Assembly: GCA_047495785.1 (NCBI GenBank)
Contig: JBLDXI010000002.1
Coordinates: forward strand, 1,364,001-1,428,000
DNA length: 64,000 bases
Reading direction: 5' to 3'
From: Lepidodermella squamata
Lineage: Eukaryota > Animalia > Gastrotricha
The position numbers and the translations under genes are program-made. The notes under the pieces were generated by a model. The model worked only from the letters and a program-made list of their open reading frames with translations, had not been told where the DNA came from and ran no database searches. Position 1 is the first letter of the stretch. Each line of letters opens with the position of its first letter. Positions 11,401-64,000 of this stretch are shown piece by piece.

Positions 11401-12997
11401 TCAACGCAGGCCGAGGCGGTTTTCTGCGGAACTGCGCCTCTGGGGTGATCGGTGCTAAGGCTATTAAGGCGGGTGGGAATAAAGGCTTAGGATCTTGCAC
11501 TACCGGCAACACCTCGCCGTGTGGTTCGAGTTCTAGTAAGCAGACAACTTGCGATACGAAGCCGTTGAGTGTCGATATCATGGCCTGTGGCGCGTCGTCG
11601 TCATCAGCGAATTCTTCGGCGACCCACGAGCCGGCGAAGCAAATAATGTCGAATACGTTACCGCGGGGCGGCGTGAACGCTGCAACTGCGATGGCGGCGA
11701 CCCAGTTCGAGAACAGCATGTTTCCAGTCGATCGAATCAAATTGTCGTGCAATCGAATCGATGAAGAAGCGGCTGCGACATTGCCGGTAAGGAAAAATTT
11801 ATTTCATTAAAAAATTTAGAATTTTTAATAAATTATGACAACTGCGGCAAAAATTCAATCTGCGGAATTTTGAAATTTTTTCAAATTTCAAATAAATTTA
11901 GATTTAATTTTTCTCAATGTTAAATTTAAAAAAATTGAAAATTCGAAATTTTTTAAATCTTCTAAATAATTTTAAAATCCAAATTAAAACTTTTGAAATT
12001 TGAAAAATTGAATTTTTAAAAAATATTTTGAAATTGAAATTGAAACATTTTTGGCAATTTGAAATTGAAATTTTTGAAGAAACTTTTACTTGGAATCGAT
12101 CAATCTAATTTGTCTCCTTAATCACTGATTCATTAAAAAATTTATTTCCTCCAGGTAACTGAAGGCTGTTACAGTTCAAGCACGTTGCGAAGAGGCAGCG
12201 CGGCTAACAAGCAATCGCTGCTGGTCGGCGTTTCCGCACCGCGCACCCCTATCAATACCAACACCAGCGTGCTAGACGAAACCGCTACATCACCCCTATC
12301 AGACAAATCTCAATCGAACAACCACCGCCAGGAATGTTCGTCATCTAGCATCGTCAGCAATTCTTCGACTAATAGTGCTATCAGCGCTGGGGTCGGGTCT
12401 TCGGGCAGTGGCCCCCAGCAGCAGGCGAGTGAGTCGAGCGGCCGGGGTACGGACGAGCCGCCCTCAGCGCCCGGCTCTACAACAACCGTGCCTCGGTCGA
12501 TTCTGGTCACTAAATCCCCGATGCCCCCGCCGCGGCCGACCGGGTTGTACCCGACCGGCGGGAATATCGCCCAGTACCACGTGTACCCGCGGCATGTTCA
12601 AAACCGGTCGCAGCCTTACCTAGCCGAGGCTGACGAAACCGGGTACGGCGGCGGTGTGGGTAGCAACCCAGCGTATTTCGCCTACACCAACCGGCACCAC
12701 CACAGCGAGCACTATTTGATGGACAACGAAAGCAGCAGTGATGAGATGCGGATGCCCAACTCGGCGTCCGGTAACAGCGTAGGGTGCCCGATTCACGGCT
12801 CAGACCAGGTCGCGCCGCCCCCGCCGCCGCCCTACCGCAGCTGCCCGGTTCACGGTCACGTGATACCGGTCGGCGCCGAGGCGACCTTCTCGCCAACGTC
12901 GATACTCCGAAACCACCACAACGCCATGGTGGCCGCTGCTCAACACCAACACCACCATCAGCCGTTCAGCAATCATCTACACGGAACGATGCTATGA
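8419..12997 (+). CDS. Protocadherin (non-clustered type; signal peptide, 6 clear + 1 degenerate cadherin repeats, TM, long cytoplasmic tail); exons 8419-9627, 9795-9904, 9965-11786, 12155-12997
   Basis: Repeated DRE/DYE, DxNDN-P-F and AxDxGxP cadherin motifs; protocadherin-type Cys pair in EC1 (REAIC...NSC); TM IGLVAGLAVFAAVATLLVLLLVIVC. GT-AG junctions join the three ORFs plus a 110-nt exon in frame. Confidence 0.9.
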
Positions 12998-42075: not shown

Positions 42076-43368
42076 TCAACAAGGTTCGTCCTTAACAGCA
42101 CAGTCGCAACTACAATTTTCGATTTTCTCATTTTTCACAGATGTGATTTCCCTCTTCGACGCGTATCTATGAACATTCCGAACATGCGATTGATAGCTAT
42201 CGCGAGTTTTGAAACTCCGTTTACAACGCGCGCAAGGAAATGGCCTAGTTGATGCGTGTAGCCGGCTGTGATTAGCCAAGGCAACGGCCGAAGTTGCGCG
42301 GTGTCCACAGCCCGGGAATTTACAAACGTGGGTAAAATGAACTTTAAGGCGGTGCGAATTCAAACTTTCGAGGGAATAAAACATTTTGCAACACCGGCGA
42401 CATCTCAGTTGCAGGTGACCGGCCGTGAGGTGTCGAGATTTGATATGCTCATCCAGCTGCTCGGACGATTCGAAACGATGAAAGCCCCCGTTCAAGCAGT
42501 AAGGACACTTTGGAAGGTGAAAACGAGATGTATGCGTGTCTAGTCGCTCCTTATTCAAAAATTTCTGGCTACAGGCAGGGACCGGGCAGACGAAAATGTG
42601 ACTCTCCCTGCGATGGTGGAACAAATGTTTACGGGTTGTGAACCTCAACGGGCAATCCGGGCACTCAGCCGGGTGATCGAATCTCATATGGACCTTCATT
42701 CTACCAAAACCGAGAATTCGAGTATTGCATAACCGGCATTGAAAGAACGAATTATATAGGCGAATATGCTTCTCGATATGCATTTTCAACCCAGCTATGC
42801 CAATGCTAGTCCAGCCCTTATGACAACACGGGCAGGCGAGTTTGAAGAACGGCTCAACTTCGGTTTCGCCGAGAATAATCGCAATGTCCTCCTCAATTTC
42901 ACTTCGAAACTCGCGAGTTTTCGTCGGTTCTTGCAAGTTTTCCATGTAGCATTTCAACTCAGTTAAATGCTTTTGAATTACATGAGGAGTCATTCGTGGA
43001 GACGAATATTGCTTCTCACAGACGAAACATGAGAAACGATCACTCTTCTCCTTGCTGTACGCAACAGGTTTACCAATATTCGACTTTTTCGCCGCAGGTT
43101 TGACGTCAAGATTTTCCTCTTTGACAATTTCGGAAGGTAGTGGTTTTAAATGAGCGTAACGATTCGATAACTTCTCATATTTCGCCGCTGCCTCAGCTGC
43201 CTTAGCCCGCTTGTCTGCCTTGGTTTCTCTCCGCCGTTTTACGCCAAGACCTTGAGGTACATTCTCAACGATTGACAAATTATCCGAATGCCGACTTGTG
43301 ATGTGTTCAGTCAATTTCGCCTTTGAGACATAAACTTGCCCACAAAATCGACAATTATTAAAAGCCAT
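42076..43368 (-). CDS. Multi-C2H2 zinc finger protein (single coding exon, 430 aa)
   Basis: About ten CxxC...HxxxH/HxxxxH fingers, e.g. FPCARCKRSFKTRDSYQSHVRNVH. Confidence 0.88.
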   Translation of the reverse strand: MAFNNCRFCGQVYVSKAKLTEHITSRHSDNLSIVENVPQGLGVKRRRETKADKRAKAAEAAAKYEKLSNRYAHLKPLPSEIVKEENLDVKPAAKKSNIGKPVAYSKEKSDRFSCFVCEKQYSSPRMTPHVIQKHLTELKCYMENLQEPTKTREFRSEIEEDIAIILGETEVEPFFKLACPCCHKGWTSIGIAGLKMHIEKHIRLYNSFFQCRLCNTRILGFGRMKVHMRFDHPAECPDCPLRFTTRKHLFHHRRESHIFVCPVPACSQKFLNKERLDTHTSRFHLPKCPYCLNGGFHRFESSEQLDEHIKSRHLTAGHLQLRCRRCCKMFYSLESLNSHRLKVHFTHVCKFPGCGHRATSAVALANHSRLHASTRPFPCARCKRSFKTRDSYQSHVRNVHRYASKREITSVKNEKIENCSCDCAVKDEPC

Positions 43369-43443
43369 CTACACAAAAATTGAAAAATTAAGGTAGAAGT
43401 TATTCAGATTTTACACGCACAATCTTCAACAATTATATAATCT

Positions 43444-45309
43444 TCATCGCTCAAACAACAATACCAACTCGCAGTGCGGCGTATGTGGGAATAAATCGAC
43501 GGGCACAGCACGTTTCAGAACAAAAGGATCGCCCTGGAGACGCCGGCTGGGAATGCAAGTCAAGTGGTCGAAATTATTATAAGCTGCAGCTGGATTGCAA
43601 GACACGTAGACGAGTCGTTTAATCGCCATTGTTTTCCGAATCGTTTGAATTACAGATGCATGGATACCAGCTCTTGGCGGGTCTAAAACGGCAACGATAG
43701 AGGCTTCGTTGCTTTTGGCCTCCTCGCTCCGATTCAATACGCCATAGATCGCCTTTTCAACTTTATCGCAGATGAAAGAAATTCTTGAGGCTGGAATTTG
43801 GTTTAGAGCAACATTTTCAGCAGCATCTTTAACGGCAGGTTCGCACAGCTCAACCCCGACGACTTTAACATCCGGGTTTGCCGCGGCAATTACAATGCCA
43901 ATCGTGCCAGTTCCGCAGCACAGATCGAGAACAAGCTTAGGCTTATTAGCCTCGCCTTCAAGGGCGAAATCGCGAACGAGCGAGTATAAAACTTCGGTGC
44001 ATTTTGTGTTGATTTGAAAGAAAGACTGAGGCGAAATTCTGAATTTCAACCCGCACAATTCTTCAATAATTGAAGATAAACCAAAAATTGGCTCCTCAAT
44101 ACTTGGAGCGACATCAGTTCCGAAATCGTTCTTGCTTGAGCCAGTATTGAGATTATTCCACAACAGTCCAGTTAAACCAAGCTCTTTTCGTTTTTCTTCG
44201 GTGAAAAAATTACGCAGAGCTTCGGCTTCTTTCTCCAGGCTTTCAGTCCGTTGCTTCAGATTTCCGCTGAAAATTCCGATAACACAAACAAACTGACCAG
44301 CAGAATTGACTCGGCAAGTAAGAAAGCGGTAATTTCCATCGTGGGTGACTTGATTGAATGGTTTCAATCGATCGCCGCCTTCTCGGACGAACTGTTCAAA
44401 GGAACGAGCGAATTCGCAAAGATTTTTAGGAATTATTTTACAGGCTCCTGTTTCGGGTCTGACAACCCAGCACGAGCCATCCTTGTAAGAACCTGAATCA
44501 AGTAGATCGATTGATTCTATTTAACACCTAAGGAAAAAATGTAACTAACCTAGCCTGAAACCAACCGCCGGTAAATCATCAATGCCATAACCGACAGTGA
44601 ATTCGACCTTGTTGCGGTAGTATTCTATCTGGGGTGATTGTCGGATATCCCAGAACTCGACCGAGTCATTTAATAGCGGCTTCATGATGGCTCGCATATC
44701 TTCTGTTTTCCGACGAACTTGTTCTGCGTAATCAACTTGACACCATGGTTCCGTGGTTTCACAGAGCAGTTCACCGAGACCTTTCTTCTTCTCTTCTCCA
44801 TCTGGCATAGCACGAATCTCTTCGAGGCGCTTTACTTTGGGGTCTTCAGCTTTCGGTTCATTAGGTTTCCTTTGCTGGCGGCTTTTAACAAATGGATCAG
44901 CCGCTGGCTTCCCATGCTTCACCTCGAGAGTACAGGACTTCCATTTCAGAGAATCTAAGACTTTGAAACCGTGATCCATGTCTTCTTTGGATTTGAATAC
45001 GACGAATGCGTATGCATCTGAACCCTTCCCAAGCAGCTTAATTTTGGAAGGATTGAGACCCAAATTAGCCATTTTCTTCTTGAACGCGTTGTATCCTATG
45101 TACCGTGGGATCTGTCTCACTTCCAGTTTCCACATCTCATTAGTTTGAATGTTGTTGAGGTAAGCTAATGGATCGGACGGCGCGTTAAATATATCCGATG
45201 CCTCTGCTTCATTATCAGGTTGTTGAACGGTATCACCTCCGTTCTCGCCTTCCTCACATCTAATATCCTCCATCATCTCCGTTTCAACGCTTGCAGATTC
45301 GGCAGACAT
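43444..45309 (-). CDS. TRMT2A: tRNA (uracil-5)-methyltransferase homolog A; exons 45309-44550, 44492-43444
   Basis: N-terminal RRM, YRNKVEFTVG, SFFQIN, LDLCCGTGTIG, LDPPRAG, YVSCNP (catalytic Cys), VDLFPHTPHCE; 57-nt phase-1 intron. Confidence 0.94.
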
Positions 45310-46213
45310 TCAATTATCAGGTTAAATCGCTGTATAAAAAAATATTTTATTACTAAGCAAAATAAACAGGCACTGGACAGTTTTCGCCAACGGCAAAAAG
45401 AGATAAGATGAAATTATAAAATGAAAGAAATCGAAAATCTACTCACAACGCAATAAGGCATCATGCATGTTTACCAATAGCCATGCGAAATCAGCTTCTC
45501 AGGTGGAAATTCAGCTGAGAAATTTCGACATAAAACGAATGGCCAGCAGCCAACGGCTGGGTGCAAATAATTGCGCGCTGAGCTACATAGGAATAACATT
45601 GCATTGATATGCAGGGAATGGCCTTCGAATAAGTTCATTATGAAATTCATTATGAAAGATACAAACAGGCAATCAGGCCCACAGTCAAGCATGCAACTAA
45701 TTAGATTTATCGCGTTTTCGCTGGTCTCAATACCAGTTGGCCTGTAACTAACTTGAAAGTTTAAAGAACATACTCCTTCCAGCAGCGCAAGGTGCATTTC
45801 AGTTTCAGTCAACTATCAACCATCAACCATCTTGACTTCTTGCAACCTTCTTGACTACGAACTCAGAGACGCGTCGGTCGCGGGCCACTGCCGCGCCAAA
45901 ACTTTTGAAATAAAAATTAAATTTTTGTATTTGTTATTGAATTAACACATGACAGCTTTTCATGTAATTAAAAAAATTATATGTGAAAATAATCAAATTA
46001 GCGTTCTTAGTAACACCAGTTGGTGGTGTTTTGGAAATGTGCAAGTAGCTTAAGAACGTGATGATGCATGCCCTCCAAGCTCTGAGGCACATCAAGTTTC
46101 CAGTTAGCGGATTCTATTTTTACATCCATTTTATGATGCTAGCCAACCGCGTTACGGAGATTTCATGCTTTCGATCCTTCGCTTATTTCTCTTATTATTG
46201 ACTAGATATTTAA

Positions 46214-48194
46214 ATGGATGAAGATGACGATTTCTTTGACGAAGGAACTCCGAAGAAAGCTAACTCATCAACTTTGCTTAAAAATATTGTTGCTATAAGC
46301 GAAAAAGAATCAAGGTAAATCTTTTAACGCTTCGGTTCCTTCATCCCTACCATAATTGAATACTTATAGAGCTCGCGATCGAGAACTCTCTTCTACGGGA
46401 TCACCTGTTAATTCTCCGAACAGCCATCCATATTATGAAAACTCAGGTAGATACGGAGCCCACAGAGATTATGAGGATATCCCGCGTGTCAGTGGGGGCA
46501 GCAGTACATCGCCGGAGGTTATTTCCCCGGTTGCGAGGAAGCCTCCCATTCCTCCATCAGACGTTCACAGATTGTCTCACTCTTTGAATTTATCACACGA
46601 CTACGGCTCCAATCGTGAAGACCGGTGCAAAAAGTATGCTTTGAATGATCGGGTTAGTTTCTTTGTATTGGGTTTATCTATTTCAGCCCCGAACTTCGTC
46701 TTGATCTTTCCAATTTGGACCTAGCGAAAGCTAAGAAGAAGAAGAAGAAACCTGCGAGGAGTTCATCAGGAAGTCGCCAAAAGTCTAAAGTTGACGCTGA
46801 AGTCGAGGATCGGTCTTATGAATCCAGTCAAGTGAAAACGAAAAGCACGAAACCAAAAGTAAAAGTACCAACCGGATCGCCAAAGAAAAAATCTAGTGGA
46901 AGCAAACGCTATGGCTTGGATGGCCACGCGTACAACGGAGACGATGGCGATAGCTGCTCAACTTGCCAGTCTTCTTCGTCTAGTTGCGTGAGTGAAGTTG
47001 GCGATGACGATTTTTCGGAGCAAAGGTTTGCATGCTTCGGGCAAAGTTTTGGTCCTGTTAACAAATCATATGTTATTTTAGTGATGTTACATCAGTATCG
47101 CCGCTGAACAGCCCGCATCACTCTAATCATGTCAAAAGCGGTTACAGCTCATCTGCTCATCATTTATCATCATCAGGTCCTCGCAACAGTCCTTCCACGC
47201 CGGCTGCAAATGACTTGTTCAGGCTTATGCGTCGGCTAATTGATGACGTCGATAAGGTAGTATTACATACCTAATTCAATGACATTTTTATTAACCTGGG
47301 AATTACAGGATCAGAAAGTTTCCAGAGGCAGGGGTCAACCTGGATATGCTTCGTTTGCGGGAGACCGAGTAGCCAGTAGTACGGCTTGGTCAGGCGTGAC
47401 GGCAGGTGTTCATTCTCGCCATCCAACTCTAGGAGAAATTATTCAATCGCTGTCACGATTCCAAGTCGCGAAGGCGAAAAAAGCCAACAGTACTACTGCA
47501 CCCTCAGTAGCTTCTGGGACCGGAAGCGGTTTCTCTGGTTATTCAGGCTTCTCAGCTGCTACTACAACACTTTCCCACGCAAGTTCGAGGCACAGTTCGG
47601 TCCCTGAGCCTCCAAGACGAAAACATCATGCTGCTATCAATCGAGATAGAAAGCAGCGTGAAATAGCGTCGGAAAATTTGGTGAGATCTTGTGTTATATA
47701 AAATTAGCAAATTTTTTATTTTATTCTTTTTTCAGCGCATTTATCAACGGCTTCAAACTGTAAGAGCTTCTCCGGATGTGTCGCGGGAGCGTCAAATTTC
47801 CGATTGGCACAAGCAAGTCAGTTTTGGCGCTGGGTCATCCGGAACGGGAAAGCAGATTTACATGCCGGAACGGCTATCTTACGGTGTGTCGCCTCTCACC
47901 GGCCTTATAGCTTCAGCACCTGGGCGAGGCACGAAGCCTCTCAGGCCACAAAGCGCTGTTGCTTATTTAAACACACCATCTCAGGCGAGTTCGGTAACTA
48001 GCGACCGACCTAGGCGGCACCGGGGCGAAAGTGGAAGCAGGCCATCTTCAGGTAGTGTGCACAGCAGAACTGCAGGTGGCAGTGTTGCTAATGGATCGAT
48101 GCGAGGCGAGATGTATTTAGAGACCGCCGAGTTCGCACCTGAAGCCACACGACGTCGGAGGAAAAAATCTCGCCCTGTTTCTGGCCATTTCTGA
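46214..48194 (+). CDS. Multi-exon Ser/Arg/Lys-rich low-complexity protein of unknown function
   Basis: ATG at 46214 (MDEDDDFFDEG...) and successive same-strand ORFs separated by short GT-AG introns; internal junctions not fully resolved; no domain recognised. Confidence 0.6.
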
Positions 48195-50017: not shown

Positions 50018-51935
50018 ATGCGCGGGGTGCTAAATAATAATCGCATACCGGTATCAGTTCTTTTGGTGCTCGCCGTTGCACTTCCAAGCCATGCGTGGTT
50101 CGATTTTTTCTCGAGCATGGCGCCGACCAAAGTTATCGACGACTTCCGCGCACTTATTCAACGCACTCGTTCGAGCGTTCAAGCCGAATTAGCTGCTCAA
50201 CGCGCTCTCGTCGCGCACCTTGAAGAGGTGGAAAAATTTACGTTCGACGAGGAGAAACAACTCGATGATTTAACCGGATCTGTGACGAATCTTTTATTCG
50301 AGCTCGGCAATATTTATGGAAAGGTTAAAATCTCGAGTCAGAAACTTGTTCATCACGTAAGGATGTTGGATCAATTATCTGCTCAAATCGAACCCTTTCG
50401 GGCTAATACCTTCACGCTAGCTGACACAATGATACGATGTAATTTATTTTGATTTTTAATTAATTAATTAATCATTTTAATTATTTTAATTATTTTGAAA
50501 TTTATTAATTAATTAAATTTTTTTAGCTTTGCGAGAAATCATGAAGTACATGAATGGTGCGCCGGAAGATCTCCCGCCGTTCCTTTTCGAATTAGTCGGT
50601 ATGCAAAAGACTGGTTTTTCATTCGGCAACACCGTCCAAGGAACGGGAAAAGGCGAGAAAGAATTCTTCGACCAAGGCTTCCAGCTGTACAAACAAGGCA
50701 AATGGCAAGATGCCTATAACTTATTCATCGAATCTTGGAGGATCTACAATTTGACCCAGAGCCTTGGGGAGCAGCATAGCTTGGATGAAATGTATATTTT
50801 GGACTATGTTCAATACTCGGCCTACAAGTTGGGGAAGCTAGAGGAGGCTCTATGGGTTTGCGAACGAGCTCTTACCTTGCCTTTACAGGAAGACCAAAAG
50901 ACTCGTTTCAAGAGTTCGGCTCTGTTTTACCGTCAGGAATTGATGACTGTAACTCTGCGCAAAATGGCGAAGGAAGGCGATAGTGTTCCGGTTGAGAGGC
51001 AGATTGAAGTTGCTAAGAATCTCGAAAAAACCAAGCAGTACGACCTGTGCCGGGATGAAGTTGCGAACGAAATCAACAAAAAGTTGGCCAGCAATCCTAA
51101 ACTATTCTGCCGATACGATAATCGAAATAGGAATCCTATCTTAATCCTGTCACCGGTTAGGGAGGAATTCCTAAGCTTCAATCCTATAGTTGTTGTGCTG
51201 TATGACATGATAACCGACGATGAAATGACCCACATCAAGAATCTGGCGGAATCTAGGTTCCAGGTCGCAGGTGTTGTGTCGCCGACTACACACGAAGGTT
51301 CGGTTCAGTACGAAACTCGACGAGCTAGAATTGCCTGGTTAGAAACGCTGACGATGCCGAGATTGACGAAACGAGTGGAGGCCTACACTGGGTTGAATCC
51401 TTACGATGATGGATGCGAAATGTATCAAGTTGGCCATTACACAATTGGAGGACGTAAGTCTTGATTTTGCAGACATTCCACCTTAATCGTTTTGATTTCT
51501 TTCATTTTAGATTATGTTCCTCACTATGACCTGCTATTTGAATCTTCGAAAACGGCTGGAACAGGACTCGGAGAGCGAATCGCTACTTTATTGCTGTACC
51601 TGTCCGATGTTGAGCAGGGTGGTGGTACGGTGTTCAACGAGCTGAAACTACGCGTAACGCCTCAAGCTCGATCTGGACTGTTGTGGTACAACGTTTACAA
51701 AAACGAAACTGGCGACATGCGAACTCTACACGCAGCTTGCCCAGTTACGAAGGGCGAGAAATGGGTGACTAATAAATGGTTCAGGATGCGCGGCCAAATT
51801 CTTCACAAACCATGCGGTCGAACAGAACATGAAAATTACGGCATCAAAGACTACATCGTTCCAAAACACGTTCGAGAAATCAAGCGTGACGAAACCCCGG
51901 CTTTCAGTGATTTGCCGCGACGGCTTACTAGCTAA
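50018..51935 (+). CDS. Collagen prolyl 4-hydroxylase alpha subunit-like, full length (copy 1); exons 50018-50438, 50527-51453, 51511-51935
   Basis: Signal peptide, coiled-coil N-domain, TPR/PSB (ILDYVQYSAYKLG), YDLCR, LFCRY, PILILSPVREE, QVGHYTIGG-HYVPHYD, RIATLLLYLSDVEQGGGTVF, TLHAACPV, KWVTNKW (HxD...H and 2-oxoglutarate Lys intact). Confidence 0.92.
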
Positions 51936-52453
51936 ATTTTTCAGCTTTCATTAAATAAAATAATTTTAATCCTTTTAATTTGTATTTTCAATGAGTGTTC
52001 CCAAACTATTTAGCAAGTGCCGGTGTTTTCAGATGAATATCGTCCAGTAATAAAACGCTCTAGGGACAATTGTTTCTTCTCTCAAAAGATGACTGTTATG
52101 ATGAAGTGAACAATTGGAAAGAGCATTGGAAAGTTTATTATCACTCGAGAGCGCTTCAACAATGCTTACGTGGCCTTTTGCCCCTAATGACTGATGCGCT
52201 GTGGGCCCTACGGTAGCATTGTGGCGCCGAGAGTGACTACACTCAACCCACTCACAAGTTGTAAGATTAGCACAGTAATAAAAAAGCTCTTCAAAGTCGA
52301 CGTCATGTTTAATTTCGCATTTCGCAGACGTGGCATCTCGCTATTTGCGCGAATTTTTTAAAATTATGATATTTAATCTTCCCTCAACTCCCCGTTAATC
52401 CACCTTATAAATTGTTAATATACCTTTGAATTAGGCAATTGGTTAGTTATACC

Positions 52454-53419
52454 ATGGCTAAACTATTGCTGACCGTTGTTTTCCTCGGCTACTTCGCATA
52501 TGCCAATGGCTTCCTGGAGAACTTCTACGCGTATCAAAACCCGACACAGATCATCAACAGCTTCCGCGATTCAGTTTTCGTCACCACTCTTCGCCTCAAA
52601 CGAGAAGCTGCGATTCATCAAATGATCCTCGACCACCTGAAGGCGATGATTGCGTTCCAGAGCGAGAAGGACAAGGAGATTGACGAAATGACGGACTCGA
52701 TCACAACCCTGGTTCTTGATCTGCCTAACCTGTACCCGAAAGTGCTCAACGCCTCGACTCATCTGGTTGAATACCTCAAGAATTTGACCGAACTACGGAA
52801 CAAGCAAGACGAGCTGGAACACAGCACTTTCCTCGGCTATGACGAAGTTCTAGATCGTAAGCTTATCGTCAGATACGTCAATTTATTATAATTTTTGCTT
52901 TTTTTGTGTGATCAAGGTCTTCGCGAAATCATGACCAACCTCGGAGCCAAGTCTGATGAGCTGCCGCCAGAAGCGTACGAGGCGATTGGTGACATTCGCA
53001 AGCGCCCGACTTACGACTACGCGCTGCGAGTTCGCCAGGAAAAGATTCATTTCGATGAAGGCATGAAGTACTTCAACGAAGAGAAATGGGAGGAGGCGTA
53101 TGAAGCGTTCGTCAGGTCGTGGCTAGCGTACAATGACACGTTGAAGATCGGCTCGCGAGCCCTTGTCAACATTTTGAACATCCACGACCACGTTCAGTAC
53201 ACGGCTTTCAAGACCGGGCGGCTGGAACGCGCCATCGAAGTCGCGTCTCTCATTGCTGACAGCGAAATGTGGGTCGAAGATACGCGCCAACGCCAGCGCG
53301 ATAACATCAAGCACTACCGGGACCTTCTGAGCGGCAACGCGACCACGACGACGACTGAAACAACAACAACCGAAACCGCTACCGAGGCGACACCGACCGA
53401 GACCAAGTCCGAGCTATAG
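52454..53419 (+). CDS. P4H-alpha-derived non-catalytic protein (signal peptide, N-domain, TPR/PSB, Thr-rich tail, C-terminal KSEL); exons 52454-52856, 52917-53419
   Basis: Aligns with the N-terminal half of copies 1 and 3, with the same phase-1 intron; ends ...TTTTETTTTETATEATPTETKSEL*; AATAAA follows near 53485. Confidence 0.82.
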
Positions 53420-54081
53420 AATTCGAATAATTGCTCATTAACAATCACGTTACGTAGGATCAATATGACACATCGTTTGGTGCAATAAAAAAGCGAAGGA
53501 AAAAAAACCGCACTCATCTTTCATCTTTCAGCGAAATTTATACCGCACACATTTTTTAATAAAAAAAAATGGTGTATGACAAAAAACAAACAACACATCT
53601 CCTGTCGAGAGTCAGGTAAACAGTAGCATCTATTTATATAACTATACAGCGGCTTTTTGAAAATATAACGCTGTTTTACGTTGTGCCCAGCAGCCGTCAT
53701 GCATTACTCGTTAACTAATAGCGTTTCTTTAGCTTGAGTAGTATAGCAGTATAACGATTCTCGCAGCACGCGCGGCACAGGTGGTACTACTACACGACGG
53801 CAGCAATACAATACTAGGCAATGTATAATAATGCAGCGACAAGAGGCATTGTTGAATCCTATCGACTAAATAAACTTTGGCTCGACAGCGCGAGTTGAAT
53901 GTATATGCAAGACTGTCATTACTTGTGCCCCATATATTTATATTGATGTTCCTGTTCGCCGTCGCGGTTGAAGACACTTTGACAAGTAGAATGTTGCTTC
54001 TGTCTAGCGTCTCATTGATGTATCATCCAATTGCTATTAAATTAATTCACTTTTAACGTAGGAATTAGGCCATTTGACAAC

Positions 54082-56011
54082 ATGCGAGTGGTGGCAGTTA
54101 CTGTCTACCTGTTCGTGCTGCTGTCATCTGCCCATGGCTTTCTCGAATTTTTGTCTAGTCTCTCGCCGACTCGCATTGTCGACAGCTTCCGCGAACTCAT
54201 CGCCACATCACGGCGCCAAATCGAATCGGAAATCGAAGCGCATAAAGCGATGTTAGCTCACCTGGAAAAAATGCGAGATTTCTCGTTTGACGAGGAGAAA
54301 AAACTCGAAGTTATGGCTAGCTCAATCACGGCCTTAATGATGGATCTACCGAATTTGTATACGAAAGTGAAAGCGTCCAGTGACCTTCTCGTATCTCACG
54401 TTATCACCCTAAACGAAATCCAAAACAAGATGAACTCAATCAGAAGTCAATCCTATCTAGCTATCGATGAAGTGATAAAAAGTGAGTCAATAAATCTCCC
54501 TTAAAATTATCCTAATATAAAACCCTAACCTTTAGGAATCCGGGAATTGATGAAATCGATGCATGCCAAGAATGACGAATTACCTCCCCTGGTTTTTGAA
54601 CTTATAGAGCCTCACCGGAGGAGGCCGGAATACGGCGAGGCCGAACCGGAAGGTATTGCCGGGAACTACGACGAGGCGAAGGAGCGGGAGCTGTTTGACA
54701 AGGCCTTCCAACTTCAAAAAGATGAAAAATTCCAACCAGCCTACGAGATGTTTATGGAATCATGGCGAGCTTACAACAGAACAAAGCAATTAGGAATTCC
54801 GCATAGCTTGGACGAAGTCTACATCCTGGACTACGTCCAATACACTGCTTTTAAAACTGGCAGGGTAAAGGAGGCGCATGCAGTTTGCCAGCGATTGCTG
54901 AACCAAATCGAACTGACCGAAGAGCAACGAAATCGGTTTACCAGCACCAATAGATTCTACGAACAGGAACTTTCCGCTGAATCTCTGAAAGAAATGGCGA
55001 AGAAAATCGACGACGAGCCGATTGAGAAGCAAGTAGAAATGGCGAATATGTTAGTGGCAACGAAGCAATACGACTATTGCCGTGATGACCATGCTGCCGA
55101 GGCTCTTATGAAATTGGCCGCTAATCCTAAGCTATTCTGTCGATACGACAACCGTAATCGTAATCCTGTTCTACTGCTTGCGCCAGTTCGCGAGGAGTTC
55201 ATCAGCATTGATCCTCTAGTCGTTATTCTTTACGACGTAATTTTGCCGTCTGAAATCGAGCAGTTTCAAGCGACTGCCAATAAAACGTTGTCGGTTGCCG
55301 GTGTTGTTAATTCGTCGAATTACGGCACTGAAATTCAACTTCACACCAGAAAGGCTAAAACCGCATGGATTGAAACCAACAATTTACCCCGTTTAACGAC
55401 TCGTTTAGAGGCATACACTGGTCTGAATCCCTACGAAGATGGTTGTGAAATGTACCAAGTCGGTTACTACAAAATTGGAGGACGTAAGTCTATTACAATC
55501 TTTTGAGTTTTTCTATTTTCAATAATTCCAAACAGATTACAGCCCCCATTATGACACGTTGTTCGAGGCAGCAACTGAAAGTGGTTTGGGCGATAGGATA
55601 GCGACACTGCTGATTTACATGAACGATGTTGAGGAAGGTGGTGGTACGGTGTTTACTGATTTGAAAGTTCGCGTTACTGCTACAGCTCGAGCCGGTGTTT
55701 TTTGGTACAATTATTTCAAGAATGAAACTGCTGACATGAGAACTATGCATGGTGCTTGCCCTGTAATCCGCGGTGAAAAATGGGTTAGTTTTCTAATAAT
55801 CCATATTATAGGAAATATTTCAAGTTTTTTCGTTCAGGTCTCTAATAAGTGGTTCCGGTGGAGGGGCCAACTGCTGCATAAATTGCAAGGAAAATCGCCT
55901 GAGGAGAATTTTTCATTCGCCGACTACAATTTGACCCCGGCGGCCATACAACTTCGCAGCGAGCGTAATAAACCGCCTGTAACTGAAACACTTCCTCGTA
56001 AACTCAGCTGA
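54082..56011 (+). CDS. Collagen prolyl 4-hydroxylase alpha subunit-like, full length (copy 3); exons 54082-54481, 54536-55483, 55536-55783, 55838-56011
   Basis: Same architecture as copy 1: [42 protein letters not shown]. Confidence 0.92.
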
Positions 56012-56211
56012 ACAAAGGTTCATTTTTTACAAATCCTGTATCCATGTCATTCCAAAAATATGTTATCGCGTAATGAAACTTTATATTTTTACTAAATTAC
56101 TGAAAAAATAAAGTGTGCTGGAACGTATTTTAATTCAAGCAATGTTTTGAACAACGAACGTACGACCGTCAACACGTAAACATCTTTTCACTTGGTAATA
56201 CGCGAGTTGCG

Positions 56212-57030
56212 ATGAACAAGGTTTTACTCGTAGCTTCCTTAGCCGTCTTGGCTATTCTCCCGGAGAACTTTTTCACTTTCGTCTACCAAGCAACTCGAGA
56301 TTCTGTCCTCGGCCTCATTTACGACAACACCGAAGGTTACCTGTTTAGCAAAGGTGAATCGCTGAAGAACGAGGGAAAATGGGACGAAGCTCTCGAGGCC
56401 TTTCAAGAATCTTGGAAAGCCTACAACAAAACTGAAGAGAACGGCGGGTTTCATTTTGTCGATCTTCTGACTTTGCTGGACGGAATACAACTGATAGCGT
56501 TCAAAGCCGGGAAATTCGCTTACGCTAAGTCGGTCTGCGCTCTGATTTTGGAAAGCGAGAAGATTGAGCTGGATGAGACACAACGGTACACGCTGCAGCG
56601 GAATATCGATTTGTATGAGCAGCAAATAACTGCTGAGCTGCATAAGGAGCTGGCCGATTCTGAGGGTGGCACTGAAAGGGATTTTTGGGATGTTGGGTTC
56701 CAGTTTATCAAGTCCGAAAATTGGGCCGATGCTTACGAAAACCTTCAGCAGTCGCTACGGATTCACAATAAGGCCGTCGAGCTCGGGCTGCCGAGCATCA
56801 TTCCCGAGATTCAAATTCTAGACCTCATTCAGTACACTGCGTTCCAGCTTAAACAGTACGAAGATGCGTTCGAAGTCTGCTGGCGTATTGTATACGATTT
56901 GGAGTTAAGCAAAGATCTCGCAGCTCAGTACAAACCTACAGTTGACAACTGCAGGGTGAATCTCAGAAATAACCCTGGCTTTAAACCGAAAAGAGCTCGT
57001 GATTATGATGCTAGTGCTTATGATGACTGA
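56212..57030 (+). CDS. Secreted/ER protein of two tandem P4H-type TPR/PSB modules, without catalytic or N-domain
   Basis: Signal-like N-terminus; two repeats of F.KG...W..A...F..S...YNK....LD.IQ..AF....A..VC..I, matching the PSB region of the neighbouring P4H genes. Confidence 0.8.
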   Translation: MNKVLLVASLAVLAILPENFFTFVYQATRDSVLGLIYDNTEGYLFSKGESLKNEGKWDEALEAFQESWKAYNKTEENGGFHFVDLLTLLDGIQLIAFKAGKFAYAKSVCALILESEKIELDETQRYTLQRNIDLYEQQITAELHKELADSEGGTERDFWDVGFQFIKSENWADAYENLQQSLRIHNKAVELGLPSIIPEIQILDLIQYTAFQLKQYEDAFEVCWRIVYDLELSKDLAAQYKPTVDNCRVNLRNNPGFKPKRARDYDASAYDD

Positions 57031-57401
57031 ACAAAATCGGGAGGTTCCAATATTCTCTTCACGATCAAAAATAAAAAGAAAGAAAGCTAATGCAGAAGCC
57101 CGATATGCAATCCAAGAAAAACAAGGTTGAACCAGGAGTATATAGCCAATTTATTTTCAATCTTATACTTGTTACAACACGCCAACATTACAAAAACTAC
57201 TAGAAACGGCTAGCTCAGCAGCGCTTACAAAATAAAACAAGAAACAAACAGTACCACTTCGGCCCAATAGGGCAGCTGGGGAATATTCATTATTTTCTAT
57301 ATATATAGGTAAGTCTATAATTGTGATAAATCATTGTCAAAATTACCGAGAAGGTGCCAAGCAAATGTTTTAAATGCGGAGGTTTCAAGCTATGTCATGA
57401 G

Positions 57402-60400
57402 CTACAGATCGGGTGTAACTAGTTTAGCAGCGTTTTCTGCCGCCGATAAAAGTTCGGTAGTTTTCTGTTTTTCTTCTGTAAATCCATACCCCGAACCGAC
57501 CAATTGCAAAGCTGTTCGATCCTTCTTGTCTTTCGACAGAGCATCAACGCCGAATTGCTCAAGGAGTAACTTAACAACATCTACACTACCCCATTCAGCT
57601 GCGTGGTGCAATGGCGTCTTGCCGTCCTTATCCTTGTCGTCAGCTTTGGCTCCGAAATCTCGAATCAGCAGGTTTACAACTTCTGCATGACCACCGTGAG
57701 CTGCGTAGTGCAATGGAGTCATGCCGTTCTCATCCTTGTCGCCAGCTTTGGCTCCAAAATCTCGAATCAGTAGGTTTACAACTTCTGCATGACCACCCTG
57801 AGCTGCGTAGTGCAATGGAGTCTTGCCGTATTTATTCTTGTCGTCAGCTTTCGCTCCAAAATCTCGAATCAGCAGGTTTACAACTTCTGCATGACCACCC
57901 AGAGCTGCGTAGTGCAATGGAGTCATGCCAAATAATTTATCCTTGTCGTCAGCTTTGGCTCCAAAATCTCGAATCAGCAGGTTCACAACTTCTGCATGAC
58001 CACACTGAGCTGCGTAGTGCAATGGAGTCCAGCCGTCCTTATCCTTGTCGTCAGCTTTGGCTCCAAAATCTCGCATCAGCAGGTTTACAACTTCTGCATG
58101 ACCACCTCGAGCTGCGTAGTGCAATGGAGTCATGCCAAATAATTTATCCTTGTCGTCAGCTTTGGCTCCAAAATCTCGAATCAGCAGGTTCACAACTTCT
58201 GCATGACCACCCAGAGCTGCGTAGTGCAATGGAGTCCAGCCGTCCTTATCCTTGTCGTCAGCTTTGGCTCCAAAATCTCGAATCAGCAGGGTTACAACTT
58301 CTGCATGACCACCTCGAGCTGCGTAGTGCAATGGAGTCATGCCAAATAATTTATCCTTGTCGTCAGCTTTGGCTCCAAAATCTCGAATCAGCAGGTTCAC
58401 AACTTCTGCATGACCACCCAGAGCTGCGTAGTGCAATGGAGTTAAACCGTCCTTATCCTTGTCGTCAGCTTTGGCTCCGAAATCTCGAATCAGCAGGGTT
58501 ACAACTTCTGCATGACCACCTCGAGCTGCGTAGTGCAATGGAGTCTTGTCGCCCTCATCCTTGTCGTCAGCTTTGGCTCCAAAATCTCGAATCAGCAGGT
58601 TCACAACTTCTGCACGACCACGTTGAGCTGCGTAGTGCAATGGCGTCTTGTCGCCCTCATCCTTGTCGTCAGCTTTGGCTCCAAAATCTCGAATCAGCAG
58701 GTTCACAACTTCTGCATGACCACGTTGAGCTGCGTAGTGCAATGGCGTCTTGTCGCCCTCATCCTTGTCGTCAGCTTTGGCTCCGAAATCTCGAATCAGC
58801 AGGTTTACAACTACTGCATGACCACCCTCAGCTGCGTAGTGCAATGGAGTCCAGCCGTCCTTATCCTTGTCGTCAGCTTTGGCTCCGAAATCTCGAATCA
58901 GCAGGGTTACAACTTCTGCATGACCACCCAGAGCTGCGTAGTGCAATGGAGTCCAGCCGTCCTTATCCTTGTCGTCAGCTTTGGCTCCGAAATCTCGAAT
59001 CAGCAGGGTTACAACTTCTGCATGACCACCTCGAGCTGCGTAGTGCAAAAGCGTCTTGTCGCCCTCATCCTTGTCGTCAGCTTTGGCTCCAAAATCTCGA
59101 ATCATCAGGTTCACAACTTCTGCATGACCACGTTGAGCTGCGTAGTGCAATGGAGTCCAGCCGTCCTTATCCTTGTCGTCAGCTTTGGCTCCGAAATCTC
59201 GAATCAGCAGGGTTACAACTTCTGCATGACCACCTCGAGCTGCGTAGTGCAATGGAGTCTTGTCGCCCTCATCCTTGTCGTCAGCTTTGGCTCCAAAATC
59301 TCGAATCAGCAGGTTCACAACTTCTGCATGACCACGTTGAGCTGCGTAGTGCAATGGCGTCTTGTCGCCCTCATCCTTGTCGTCAGCTTTGACTCCAAAA
59401 TCTCGAATCAGCAGGTTTACAACTACTGCATGACCACCCTCAGCTGCGTAGTGCAATGGAGTCCAGCCGTCCTTATCCTTGTCGTCAGCTTTGGCTCCGA
59501 AATCTCGAATCAGCAGGGTTACAACTTCTGCATGACCACCCAGAGCTGCGTAGTGCAATGGAGTCCAGCCGTCCTTATCCTTGTCGTCAGCTTTGGCTCC
59601 GAAATCTCGAATCAGCAGGTTCACAACTTCTGCATGACCACGTTGAGCTGCGTAGTGCAATGGAGTCTTGTCGCCCTCATCCTTGTCGTCAGCTTTGGCT
59701 CCAAAATCTCGAATCAGCAGGTTCACAACTTCTGCATGACCACGTTGAGCTGCGTAGTGCAATGGCGTCTTGTCGCCCTCATCCTTGTCGTCAGCTTTGG
59801 CTCCAAAATCTCGAATCAGCAGGTTCACAACTTCTGCATGACCACGTTGAGCTGCGTAGTGCAATGGCGTCTTGTCGCCCTCATCCTTGTCGTCTGCTTT
59901 GGCTCCGAAATCTCGAATCAGCAGGTTTACAACTACTGCATGACCACCCTCAGCTGCGTAGTGCAATGGAGTCTTGCCAAAAACATCCTTGTCGTCAGCT
60001 TTGGCTCCAAAATCTCGAATCAGCAGGGTTACAACTTCTGCATGACCACGTTGAGCTGCGTAGTGCAATGGCGTCTTGTCGCCCTCATCCTTGTCGTCAG
60101 CTTTGGCTCCAAAATCTCGAATCAGCAGGGTTACAACTTCTGCATGACCACCTCGAGCTGCGTAATGCAATGGAGCCTCGCCGAACCTATCCTTGTCGTC
60201 AGCTCTAACACCGTTTTCGTTTAACAGGCTTCTAACAAGCTCAGCGTTACCACATTCTGCAGCGATTTGAAGCATTGTCCTTCTGTAACCATCCGCATCG
60301 CTCATTGTGCATCTTTTCAGCAACGTTATTGACCCGTAAAGATCTTCTGCTCCACGGTGCAAGTTGAGCAGATCATCATAGGTTTTGCTTTCAATCAGTG

Positions 60401-61912
60401 GAATCTGTAATTCAACAATATGACGAAATGATTTACGTATTCAGTTTTTAATTTGATTCAGAATTGCTTTTTCTGCTCTGTTTTTCGTTACAATGTTTCG
60501 GTTGTACTCAAATGAACTAAGCCAAACCAAAATAAACCGAAATGTGCGGGCTAGATGCTCCTATAAAGCAACCTATAACGTCTACCCTAACAGTTATTTG
60601 TGGCTCTCAATTTTCTAGGCTGTACGTAGTTATTTATTAGCACCACCCGAGCAATATAGTACTTATGTATCGAGATGAAGAAAAGCACTTACTACGTCTC
60701 TCACGGCATCAACGAGTCCCACCTCCTCTGGCCAGTAAGCTTTCTCCAGCAAATTCGCAGCAGATGGCCGCCTTCCCAATTCATTATCGAGCAGCCTGTC
60801 GGGGCAGCTCATCATCCAGTTCACAAAATCTCTGCATTGCTGCGAATATCCTCGTGATTCTTCGTGTGGTCTTATATGGAATAGTAATATCCTTTAAAAG
60901 CTCATCATTTTAAATGTTAAGCGCTCACAATATCGTCATCCATTCAACCCAGGTTGGCCTAGTGAACTGAATGAAGCAAATTAATTTAACGCATATAGGC
61001 TATTCTGGCTGAGATTTTTTGCAAGAATTACTGGCTTCCTGTTGTTAGCAAGCTCGTACAGCGTAACCCCTAGTGACCAAATGTCTGTCCTTGGCGTATG
61101 CTCGCGGAAACCCCACAAATCGGGTGACATATACTCCTTCGTACCCAGGATTAATTCATCATCGTTTTCGTGCACCCTGCTCACAGACCTAATATCAAAG
61201 AGCTTAGATTTATGAACTAACATCATTTTGGTTTGATTGCAAAACTTCACCTCTGTAAGATTTTAACCAGCCCAAACCCACCCAATTTCAACCATTTTCT
61301 ATCTTCACTGACGTAGATATTTCGCGGCGTTATGTCTCGGTGGACAATGCCCTTCTTATGAAGGTAATTGACCGCAAGTAGTAGCTGGTCAACCCATTCA
61401 ATGAATTGCGTTTCAGTTATGCTGGATGTGTGCGGGTCGCGAATGTAGCTCTCAAGAGTTCCTCCAGCACAATGCTCCATCACAACATAGTACATTTCGC
61501 AATCCTGATTGTCTGGATTCGAGCCTTTGTACATTTCTAGCGAAAGATCACCTTGTTATATGATGTAAAATATTCAAAACTATCGGCACCTCTGAATGCT
61601 CCAAATATCCGAACTATCAGGGGATGATTAATCTTCATCAACTTGGCGTGCTATTTTTGAGAGAAAAATCATAAACAAATTCACAAGTAATATAGTTATT
61701 ACATCTCGTAAGCTCGTTTCAATGACCTCTTCCACTTGTCTATTCTTGTTGTATTGTTGATCTAATCTAAGTCTGGTCAAATTGACCTCTTTGGCGATGT
61801 AACGCTGAGGACCGTAATAGCGCTTTCGAACTATGAACGCTTCCCCATGTTTACCAGCTCGTCCCAGACTTTCGACTATGCTGAACTGGTTGGATGAAGT
61901 AAACAAAGCCAT
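57402..61912 (-). CDS. NEK-like (pseudo)kinase fused to about 28 ankyrin repeats; proposed exons 61912-61703, 61650-61590, 61536-61251, 61188-61032, 60966-60929, 60870-60693, 60404-57402
   Basis: Kinase subdomains YIAKEV, HPLIV, VVMEHCAGGTL, YLHKKGIVHRD, GTKEYMSPD, DIWSLGVTLYEL, RRPSAANLL are joined by 52-65 nt introns. A phase-0 GTAAGT (60692) to TACAG (60405) splice puts the kinase in frame with the 986-aa ankyrin ORF. Both parts are confident; the fusion is inferred. Confidence 0.72.
57630..60188 (-). repeat. Coding tandem array of 25 near-identical ankyrin repeats (22 x 102 nt + 3 x 105 nt)
   Basis: Unit xxxxTPLHYAAxxGHAEVV[NT]LLIRDFGAKADDKD counted from the translation; unit lengths sum to the 2559-nt span. 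Confidence 0.95.
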
Positions 61913-62157
61913 TCTTAGCACACTTCAGACACTTCAGCCAGAAGAAAAATAGGGAAAAATAATAACCAAGCGAACCCTGAAAAACAAATATAATTTTCTG
62001 GCCTTTCTTATTCGTAGGAAGACAGGAACAGATAAAGTCGGCGTGATATCTCGACTGATAATATCATTCATTTTACAAATCTGTTAAAATGCGAATTTCC
62101 TCTTTATCTGATATCACTCAAATCCCACTTTTTGAAACATCAAGCAAGCGAAGGCAG

Positions 62158-62201
62158 TGTTTTATCTATTACGGTTGATTAGTGCCGTAATAGATAAAAC
62201 A
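62158..62201. repeat. Perfect 17-bp inverted repeat with 10-nt loop
   Basis: TGTTTTATCTATTACGG (62158-62174) and CCGTAATAGATAAAACA (62185-62201). Confidence 0.9.
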
Positions 62202-63060
62202 GCCAGTTCGTTTTTGAAAGAATATAGGGTTTTGAGCTGTTTGGCGGCGATAGCTGTGAATTTTATCTATTGAGGGGAAGCCGAGGAAGGGAGACCAGAC
62301 ACAGCCGAGGCGACAACCCGAGTGTGCAAACACCAGGGTGTTTTAAGGGTGTTTGTTCCAACAAGTGTGCTCATTCTTCGAACAGCTGATGTCATCGCCC
62401 GACGAGCGAAAATCTGACGAAAAAGAACTGAAGCTACGCTTTCAAAATGCCCTCGCGGAAATTTGCGACCCGTATAAGCACAACTGTTTCAGAGAGCTTA
62501 ATTCAAAATTTGAAAACAAGTATCATTTCTCGACATTTTCTTTAGCTTGATGAAACTTGGAATATCTTTTTGGCTCCAGTAATTTGTATCACTGATTCCC
62601 TCGCTGCGGTAGTCAGAAATTTAGCTGCGAATTCATGAAAGAAAGATGTTTGAAAAATGAATTAAGGCGCAACAAACGCAGATCAAAAATTGCAAAATAT
62701 AGATCCCGAGCTGAAAATCTCACTGAAATTACCCGATAGCAGATAACGGCCGACTACAATTTTTATCATTTGAAACTGAACCTATACCACTGCAGAATTT
62801 GTCTCAAAAACAACGTATAGGAGCCTGCGTTTTCAATGACATTCAGAAATTCTCAGACTCGGATGGGACATATATAGCTTGTTCATCACCGGTTTCGGTG
62901 CGCTTTCAGACACAGGTAGGATCACGTATTGTGTCGTTACCGCAGCACGTTCAAAACACCATCGTCCAGACGATGTATACATCACATAAATACACAATGT
63001 AGGTAACACACAATGCGCTTATTGTGCTAAACTTTTATACATTTTCACATAAATAGAGAT

Positions 63061-64000
63061 ATGCTGCTCAACTCGGTAGTAGTTTTAGCCACAACTTTGC
63101 TCGCTGTTACCTGCTCTAGCTCATCAGAACTGAGCAGCCTTCTCGAGCAGGGTATGCGATTGATGGCAGCCGAGGAATGGGACGAGGCGCGGGAGACCTT
63201 CTTACGACTGCTTCAAATTTTCAGCAAACTGCCGTCCATAGAGCAAGATAACTCGATTCTTATGACAATCCTAGACTACCTGCAATACACAGCGTATAAA
63301 TCAAACAAATTCTCACAGGCGTACCAAGTTTGCGAGAAAATTTTAACCGGCGGATTTCATTTAAGCGATGATGACCGCGAAAAGTACAAGTCAAGCCTGG
63401 AAATTTACCGGCAATTCCTCGCGATCGATCGGCAGAAAGAGGCCTTCGAGAAAGACGGCGGGTCTGAACGCGAATTCTGGGAGAAAGGCTACGAGTTATA
63501 CCGGGCGGATAATCTGACAGAGGCGCTAGCAATGTTCAGAGAATCGCATAGAATCTACAACAAAGCAACCGAGCTCGACATCCCGCATATTGTTCAAGAA
63601 ATCGATATTTTAGACTACATTCAATATTTGGCGTTCCGAGTTGGAGATGAGGAAGAAGGCTACGCGGCTTGTGATAGGATTGTTCACGAGCTCGAGATGA
63701 CAGACGAGCAAAAAGCGACTTATGCCGAGACTTTTGCCGACTGCAAAACGAGAATGGGCCAATTCGCAACTCATGCAGTCTCAAAGTTGAACGGGAAACC
63801 CGAGGAGAGGCAAATTCGAACAGCTAAGGTGCTTCTGACTGAAAACGATCACTACAACTTTTGCAGGGACGATGTCGCGAATGAGGCGGCGAGAATTCTG
63901 TCAGCAAATTCGAAACTTTTTTGTAGATTAGACAACCGGCAATTCCACCCTCTCCTTGTCCTAGCTCCTGTTAAGGAAGAATTCCTAAGCCTCGATCCAG
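63061..64000 (+). CDS. P4H-alpha-like gene, 5-prime part (signal peptide, two TPR/PSB modules, start of catalytic region); runs off the window and is absent from the ORF track
   Basis: Manual translation is open from ATG 63061: MLLNSVVVLATTLLAVTC...ILDYLQYTAYK...DGGSEREFWEKG...ILDYIQYLAFRVG...YNFCRDDVANE...LFCRLDNRQFHPLLVLAPVKEEFLSLDP. Confidence 0.88.
   Translation, partial: MLLNSVVVLATTLLAVTCSSSSELSSLLEQGMRLMAAEEWDEARETFLRLLQIFSKLPSIEQDNSILMTILDYLQYTAYKSNKFSQAYQVCEKILTGGFHLSDDDREKYKSSLEIYRQFLAIDRQKEAFEKDGGSEREFWEKGYELYRADNLTEALAMFRESHRIYNKATELDIPHIVQEIDILDYIQYLAFRVGDEEEGYAACDRIVHELEMTDEQKATYAETFADCKTRMGQFATHAVSKLNGKPEERQIRTAKVLLTENDHYNFCRDDVANEAARILSANSKLFCRLDNRQFHPLLVLAPVKEEFLSLDP

Follow-up and report, generated by a model that had tools for sequence, protein, structure and literature searches.

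The stretch analysed here, called the window, comprises 64,000 nucleotides of the gastrotrich Lepidodermella squamata (assembly GCA_047495785.1, contig JBLDXI010000002.1, positions 1,364,001 to 1,428,000 of the forward strand). Six-frame reading of its last part, at 50-64 kb, revealed five paralogous genes for the alpha subunit of collagen prolyl 4-hydroxylase (P4H-alpha), all on the plus strand, two of which encode no catalytic domain. In the canonical subunit, the N domain dimerises the alpha chains, the PSB (peptide-substrate-binding) domain binds proline-rich peptides, and the catalytic (CAT) domain binds protein disulphide isomerase (PDI) (PMC12340787, PMC12433258). Gene models were obtained by joining open frames at canonical GT-AG splice sites, with exons searched separately, and architectures were mapped with hidden Markov models (HMMs) built from window sequences and their relatives. 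The five genes, g1 to g5, are as follows.

50018-50438, 50527-51453 and 51511-51935, plus strand: g1, 590 residues, three exons (introns of 88 and 57 nt); signal-like segment, coiled coil, PSB, CAT
52454-52856 and 52917-53419, plus strand: g2, 301 residues, two exons (intron of 60 nt); signal-like segment, coiled coil, PSB, then a Thr-rich tail with the KSEL end
54082-54481, 54536-55483, 55536-55783 and 55838-56011, plus strand: g3, 589 residues, four exons (introns of 54, 52 and 54 nt); signal-like segment, coiled coil, PSB, CAT
56212-57030, plus strand: g4, 272 residues, single exon; signal-like segment, PSB, PSB
63061 to beyond 64000 (window end), plus strand: g5, at least 313 residues, no intron seen; signal-like segment, PSB, PSB, start of CAT

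Five paralogues in four architectures, all on one strand, had been proposed by the first-pass annotation of the same DNA, and the frames, splice models and domain HMMs found them where it had placed them: an N region followed by PSB and CAT twice, an N region with PSB, a PSB pair, and a PSB pair leading into CAT. The introns of the g1-g3 models are short (52-88 nt) and all of GT-AG type. The first is shared by g1, g2 and g3 in position and phase, and the second is common to g1 and g3. Each of g1-g4 ends in one terminal stop, and AATAAA-like polyadenylation motifs lie between each of these stops and the next start. The intergenic gaps within g1-g4 measure 200-660 nt. Read by eye, all five products open with 1-12 polar residues, and a signal-like hydrophobic stretch 15-20 residues long follows. 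Local blastp showed paralogy well above chance level (E 1e-8 to 1e-123; identity 27-53%), with g1 and g3 sharing 53% identity over exon 2 and the other pairs 27-43%. No further P4H copies were detected by tblastn in positions 1-50000 of the window.

The array encodes seven PSB modules, located as follows.

50646-50978, plus strand: PSB of g1, from alignment and a phmmer match to 1tjc and 2v5f
53039-53344, plus strand: PSB of g2, from alignment and Pfam TPR_P4H (E 2.4e-4)
54676-55008, plus strand: PSB of g3, from alignment and Pfam TPR_P4H
56329-56655, plus strand: g4a, first PSB of g4, from alignment and HMM, with the most degenerate groove
56665-56985, plus strand: g4b, second PSB of g4, from a structural match and as sister of g5b in the tree
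63127-63450, plus strand: g5a, first PSB of g5, from alignment and HMM
63457-63780, plus strand: g5b, second PSB of g5, from alignment, HMM and tree

Pfam TPR_P4H scored the modules at 21-29 bits, the gathering cut-off of 27 being passed by g5 only (28.7, in two stretches). With phmmer, g1 matched the sequences of the human PSB-I crystal structures 1tjc and 2v5f (E 1e-3), and neither g4 nor the PSB pair of g5 found a PSB among PDB sequences. The AlphaFold2 model of g4 (mean pLDDT 85.1) was compared exhaustively with 48,161 representative PDB chains, and ranked first the human P4HA2 PSB domain (C-P4H-II; 6evl_A), which fitted residues 152-256 of g4 with a Z score of 13.4 and a root mean square deviation of 2.1 Å over 94 of 94 residues. 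Z scores below about 13 are common for helical repeats; the 6evl_A match ranks first and spans the whole domain. Foldseek with the complete two-domain model returned long arrays of tetratricopeptide repeats (TPRs), and a PSB domain came first only in the exhaustive search.

The pocket residues of the PSB groove have been defined for human PSB-I (PMC12433258), whose numbering is used here; in our mapping the last PSB helix has no confident alignment. The equivalent of Asp192 is invariant in all seven modules and position 199 (Tyr199) is aromatic in all of them, position 158 (Tyr158) is aromatic in six and Tyr196 is kept in six. The equivalent of Tyr193 is a tyrosine in four modules, and is replaced by His in g2, Gly in g4a and Leu in g4b. 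By Pfam, phmmer, the fold of g4 and the groove residues, the modules are thus TPR-like peptide-binding domains with an aromatic groove, as expected of PSB. One further feature was noted in passing. The PSBs of g1, g2, g3 and g4a all retain an N-x-T sequon at one and the same place (W-x-x-Y-N-x-T). It is seemingly present, by eye, in many modules of the related animal described below, and has been lost in g4b, g5a and g5b; a conserved N-glycan on PSB is possible.

As for the catalytic domain, human P4HA2 CAT (7zsc) was matched by exon 3 of g1 (E 2e-28) and by the end of g1 exon 2 (E 2e-13), and the domain is recognised by Pfam 2OG-FeII_Oxy_3. The catalytic triad is complete in g1 and g3. Both read GGHY-x-PHYD, with PHYD as the HxD motif, across the exon 2/3 junction; the distal histidine lies in HAACP in g1 and in HGACP in g3, and the lysine that binds 2-oxoglutarate in the NKW of both (TNKW in g1). 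Judged by these residues, g1 and g3 are presumably working enzymes. The cysteine pairs of the P4H CAT domain are essential, and g1 retains both pairs of the human domain. The last CAT cysteine is absent from g3 (55838-56011), the PCG of g1 and human P4HA2 being LQG there, and one of the two intrachain disulphides may therefore be missing. In g5 only the first 50 CAT residues precede the window end, the match of the cat1 HMM starting at 63850. Neither tblastn nor the domain HMMs detected a CAT remnant 3' of g2 or g4. As these two genes have no catalytic domain at all, they are best described as derivatives of the enzymes and not as enzymes.

Since g2 and g3, and likewise g3 and g4, lie close together, it might be thought that the gene borders were drawn wrongly and that what look like short genes belong, as exons or alternative ends, to full-length P4H transcripts of the ordinary kind. 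However, every unit opens with a start codon and a putative signal peptide, and each of g1-g4 runs to an in-frame stop that is followed by AATAAA. No catalytic coding sequence is present between g2 and g3 or after g4. A join from g2 to g3 would need a cryptic site, because the PSB of g3 shares one exon with the first half of CAT, and the next CAT on the plus strand is found 6.8 kb past g4, beyond two opposite-strand genes and the start of g5. We therefore regard misdrawn borders as highly improbable.

Upstream of PSB, g1, g2 and g3 share a further region, in which hydrophobic residues recur with the periodicity of a coiled coil (z against shuffled sequences).

50102-50437, plus strand: coiled coil of g1, 3.5-residue hydrophobic periodicity with z 7.9, none at 3.6
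52520-52852, plus strand: coiled coil of g2, periodicity with z 6.5; 28-35% identity to the N regions of g1 and g3
54145-54477, plus strand: coiled coil of g3, periodicity with z 6.2

The periodicity keeps one register over about 105 residues, and AlphaFold2 predicts the N region of g1 as one helix some 104 residues long (pLDDT 83). From this, the region can be inferred to form a long heptad coiled coil. The first-pass annotation had equated it with the N domain of collagen P4H. While a helical region does stand at the N position in g1-g3, kinship with that domain was not borne out: Pfam P4Ha_N (PF08336) gave no match to the N regions of the window even at E<=10, which gives no ground for placing them in this family, and a profile of seven such regions matched a profile of canonical insect and mollusc N regions by hhalign at a probability of 0.3%. 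The coiled coil is probably a functional analogue of the P4Ha_N dimerisation domain, extreme divergence from that domain being the alternative.

The gene g2 differs from the others also in how it ends.

53330-53416, plus strand: tail of g2, a Thr/Glu-rich stretch of 29 residues to the KSEL end (KSEL at 53405-53416)

We infer that KSEL may act as a KDEL-like retrieval signal. The sole mention of this tetrapeptide in a review concerns AGR2, whose KTEL end was replaced by KSEL through engineering, localisation not being addressed there. The C-terminus of g4, AYDD, is not a KDEL-type signal.

To place the array in context, relatives were sought in several collections. A search with a PSB profile against 1.84 billion protein representatives returned mostly generic TPR proteins, together with about 12 true relatives. 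These all belong to a related animal, represented by a small number of metagenome assemblies in ENA (ERZ27333047, ERZ23486787, ERZ23486764 and ERZ27332993). A word search with exon 2 of g1 found one relative. For g4, neither word search nor exact look-up gave a match in the protein collections, from which the source genome is absent; neither g4 nor exon 2 of g1 brought up a relative in the JGI metagenomes, and the ESM Atlas, queried by features and by structure, returned generic TPR clusters only. The PSB subtype of the window is very divergent, and its profile barely detects canonical insect and mollusc PSBs. The architectures of the related animal include N-PSB-CAT, anchor-PSB-CAT, a stand-alone PSB pair (P0007, 279 residues) and a stand-alone run of four PSB modules (P0002, 486 residues). 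P0007 (L003 10001-10840) ends in AEEL, which fits the classical KDEL-type pattern and hints that PSB-only proteins may stay in the endoplasmic reticulum (ER).

One contig of the related animal, L008, proved syntenic with the window (window 42076-48191 against L008 1-4825). The order is a C2H2 zinc finger gene (minus strand), a tRNA U5 methyltransferase gene (minus strand) and an unnamed gene on the plus strand, and the P4H array comes next. The methyltransferase of L008 is 56% identical to that at 43447-45204 (minus strand) of the window, the next gene about 50% identical to 47191-48191 (plus strand), and the first P4H of L008 62% identical to g1. Such microsynteny is useful for locating orthologous loci in a poorly sampled lineage. 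The array of L008 contains three N-PSB-CAT genes, one copy ending inside PSB and two opposite-strand genes; no one-to-one partner of g2, g4 or g5 was found in it. Four more tandem copies are present on contig L010, and the PSB-only genes of the related animal sit on contigs other than L008. The different set of paralogues at the syntenic locus suggests tandem duplication of the birth-and-death type. The truncated copy of L008 (P0106, L008 13763-14329) is 188 residues long and breaks off halfway through PSB. Probably it is a duplicate in decay, polymorphism in L008 being too low to judge.

A tree of individual PSB modules, a check that the first-pass annotation had called for, was weakly resolved overall. 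It nevertheless joined g4b and g5b as sisters with support of 95/97, and a clade of g4a with g5a was not rejected by the approximately unbiased (AU) test (p 0.48). From these two results, the simplest history is a PSB-PSB-CAT ancestor from which g4 has lost CAT. The AU test rejected a tree in which the multi-PSB modules of the two species all form one clade (p 1e-4), indicating that PSB arrays have arisen more than once. P0007 was also considered as an orthologue of g4, because an ankyrin gene on the minus strand follows both; the loci otherwise differ and the modules do not group, and the candidate was dismissed.

The window also carries two opposite-strand features between g4 and g5.

57402-60362, minus strand: ankyrin-repeat frame of 986 residues, in which a 102-nt unit is repeated 25.5 times (90% identity)
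60981-61921, minus strand: protein-kinase-like exons (Pfam Pkinase E 4e-19)

These features bear on the idea, put forward in the first-pass annotation, that the five genes form a co-regulated toolkit dedicated to one collagen-like or proline-rich secretion, with their clustering itself being functional. All five genes do lie on one strand, the gaps within g1-g4 are short (see above), and the domain sets are complementary. However, no PDI, collagen, chaperone or proline-rich substrate gene was found among the annotated neighbours in the 64-kb window, which are cadherins, DUF229, a zinc finger, a methyltransferase, the ankyrin array and the kinase. The ankyrin array and the kinase-like gene split g5 from g4, the orthologous locus of the related animal is without genes of the g2, g4 or g5 type while its PSB-only genes lie on other contigs, and tandem duplication alone accounts for the clustering, as it does in Drosophila. 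A dedicated toolkit thus appears decidedly unlikely. The array looks instead as if it had grown by tandem duplication of the birth-and-death type, in the course of which domains were lost and duplicated repeatedly. What stands of the original proposal is the presence, beside the enzymes, of intact, presumably secreted PSB paralogues which have no CAT and keep most groove residues; the locus-level toolkit does not.

The next question was whether the enzyme-less copies are functional. In the related animal, those that could be compared among assemblies are. P0007 differs at five nucleotides among the four assemblies, and five of five differences are synonymous (P about 2.6e-4 given an expected synonymous share of 0.19), while its flanks differ by 1-2% and contain indels. 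Among haplotypes of the gene with four PSB modules, P0002, eight differences are synonymous and one is non-synonymous (binomial P about 1.5e-5), giving 13 synonymous against one non-synonymous for both genes together. The enzyme-less PSB proteins of the related animal are under purifying selection.

In the window, g2 and g4 could in principle be dead or dying truncated duplicates thrown off by turnover of the array, so that only g1, g3 and g5 would matter. Arrays of this kind do shed fragments, as illustrated by P0106, and two features of the genes themselves fit decay: the end branch of the g2 PSB (0.88) is about 2.5 times as long as those of g1 and g3 (0.32-0.35), and g4a has lost two groove tyrosines. 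Against this, the frames of g2 (301 codons) and g4 (272 codons) are intact and begin with putative signal peptides, despite amino-acid divergence of 60-70% from every paralogue. Their truncations coincide exactly with domain borders, and g2 has gained a new Thr-rich/KSEL end. The model of g4 folds confidently as two PSB domains, the end branch of g4b (0.79) is about the same as that of its CAT-bearing sister g5b (0.68), and analogous PSB-only arrays are constrained in the related animal. We consider decay of g2 and g4 unlikely. As read from their sequences, g2 and g4 are intact, putative proteins of the secretory pathway from which CAT has been cleanly lost, and they probably act as non-enzymatic helpers.

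The explanation that we favour, at slightly better than an even chance, is a P4H-alpha array grown by turnover in a compact genome, in which two enzymes are accompanied by g2 and g4 as non-enzymatic binders of proline-rich or collagen-like chains. Several observations weigh against it. Besides the fast evolution of the g2 PSB and the tyrosines missing from g4a, the coiled coil has no demonstrable homology to the canonical dimerisation domain, and the genes for which selection was shown are analogues in another species, whose origin was independent as far as the tree suggests. Also, KSEL lies outside the strict PROSITE pattern for KDEL, where the second position is D, E, N or Q and g2 has serine.

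According to the favoured explanation, g2 and g4 would bind proline-rich or unfolded collagen-like chains without modifying them. The P4H complex is kept in the ER by the KDEL of PDI. Having lost the domain that holds PDI, g2 could rely on its own KDEL-like KSEL end for residence in the ER, which fits, because a chain without CAT cannot borrow the KDEL of PDI. Through the shared coiled coil, g2 would probably pair with catalytic chains and might so become a modulator subunit of the ER similar to CRTAP. With its two PSB modules, g4 could serve as a bivalent reader of proline peptides or as a holdase. In g5 a second PSB replaces the coiled coil. A broader proposition is that PSB-only and coiled coil-PSB proteins have evolved repeatedly and are kept by selection as P4H-derived, non-enzymatic binders of collagen or proline-rich chains, i.e. 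as a counterpart of CRTAP in the P4H family. We hold this to be plausible, although somewhat short of an even chance.

If this is true, such proteins would serve as chaperones or as subunits by which the catalytic chains are retuned or held in check. This would be relevant where an animal has a very large repertoire of collagens and may have no chaperone of the HSP47 type. The PSB domain gives collagen P4H its grip on the substrate and is now a drug target. Should PSB-only proteins be maintained by selection, PSB would be an autonomous reader of proline peptides, and paralogues without an enzyme could tune hydroxylation, as CRTAP tunes P3H1. The PSB-only proteins would also offer natural bivalent and tetravalent binders of polyproline or collagen for structural and biochemical study. 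More generally, the array illustrates how a family of collagen-processing enzymes has diversified by domain loss and duplication in a little-studied lineage.

Two observations stand apart from the array. The profile search also retrieved four bacterial-looking proteins (P0049, P0075, P0117 and P0121) with two to three repeats of a WIYDYGLLDEF-x-NAYW...C-x-RLL module, whose match to the PSB profile covers its second half (positions 45-104; E 3e-7 to 4e-5); some of them seem, as read from the sequence, to begin with a glycosyltransferase-like region. Either bacteria possess a distantly PSB-like module, as may be the case, or the repeat resembles TPRs by chance. Far upstream in the window, cadherin-domain frames and a DUF229 gene (8419-11810, plus strand; 14735-15781, minus strand) have no relation to the P4H array.

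Finally, we compared the array with known systems. Like human P4HA1-3 and Drosophila PH4alpha, its proteins are probably secretory and arrange a helical N region, a TPR-like PSB and a 2-oxoglutarate/Fe(II) CAT in the same order. The closest human counterpart is P4HA2, both for CAT of g1 (7zsc) and for the PSB fold of g4 (PSB-II, 6evl). In contrast to canonical P4H-alpha, the N region is an unbroken coiled coil, about 105 residues long, in which no P4Ha_N homology could be detected, and forms exist that lack the N region, have two PSBs or lack CAT. Tandem-clustered expansion of the family is known from Drosophila, where 25 of 26 clustered P4H-alpha-related genes keep the order N-PSB-L-CAT (PMC12340787). 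The Drosophila gene CG34041 has no CAT, possesses one or two tandem N domains and is of 'totally unknown' function, its authors speculating that it pairs with other alpha chains (PMC12340787). It resembles g2 and g4 as a CAT-less member of an expanded P4H-alpha family with tandem non-catalytic domains. By its description, these are 'N domains' and not PSB-PSB or coiled coil-PSB-KSEL, and it belongs to an independent lineage and origin. Loss of CAT is therefore not new in kind. The first-pass annotation knew of no description of such a combination, which was too strong a statement in view of CG34041 (PMC12340787) and CRTAP (PMC11381544). For PSB-PSB, four PSBs in a row, PSB-PSB-CAT and coiled coil-PSB-KSEL, no description came up in our limited literature search, which involved no count of architectures across proteomes. 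The array itself is real and well defined, and what is already known in kind is the tandem P4H-alpha expansion and the loss of CAT.

The nearest analogues in architecture are P0007 and P0002 of the related animal, which likewise have nothing but tandem PSBs of this divergent subtype after a signal or anchor segment. Their loci are different ones, their modules form no clade with those of g4 and g5 (AU p 1e-4), and their origin was probably independent of these. The nearest analogue in function would be CRTAP, which is 36% identical to P3H1 over the N-terminal TPR part, has no oxygenase domain, and stabilises and assists P3H1 (PMC11381544). Both g2 and g4 are, like CRTAP, TPR paralogues of a collagen prolyl hydroxylase without its oxygenase. 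CRTAP differs from them in belonging to the Leprecan/P3H family and in pairing through its TPR domain instead of a coiled coil, and the P3H1/CRTAP structure 8k0e matched the g4 model at the generic TPR level (Z 10.2). The resemblance would accordingly be one of function and not of membership. Seen beside these systems, the most interesting aspect of the array is the apparently repeated and selected emergence of PSB-only proteins.

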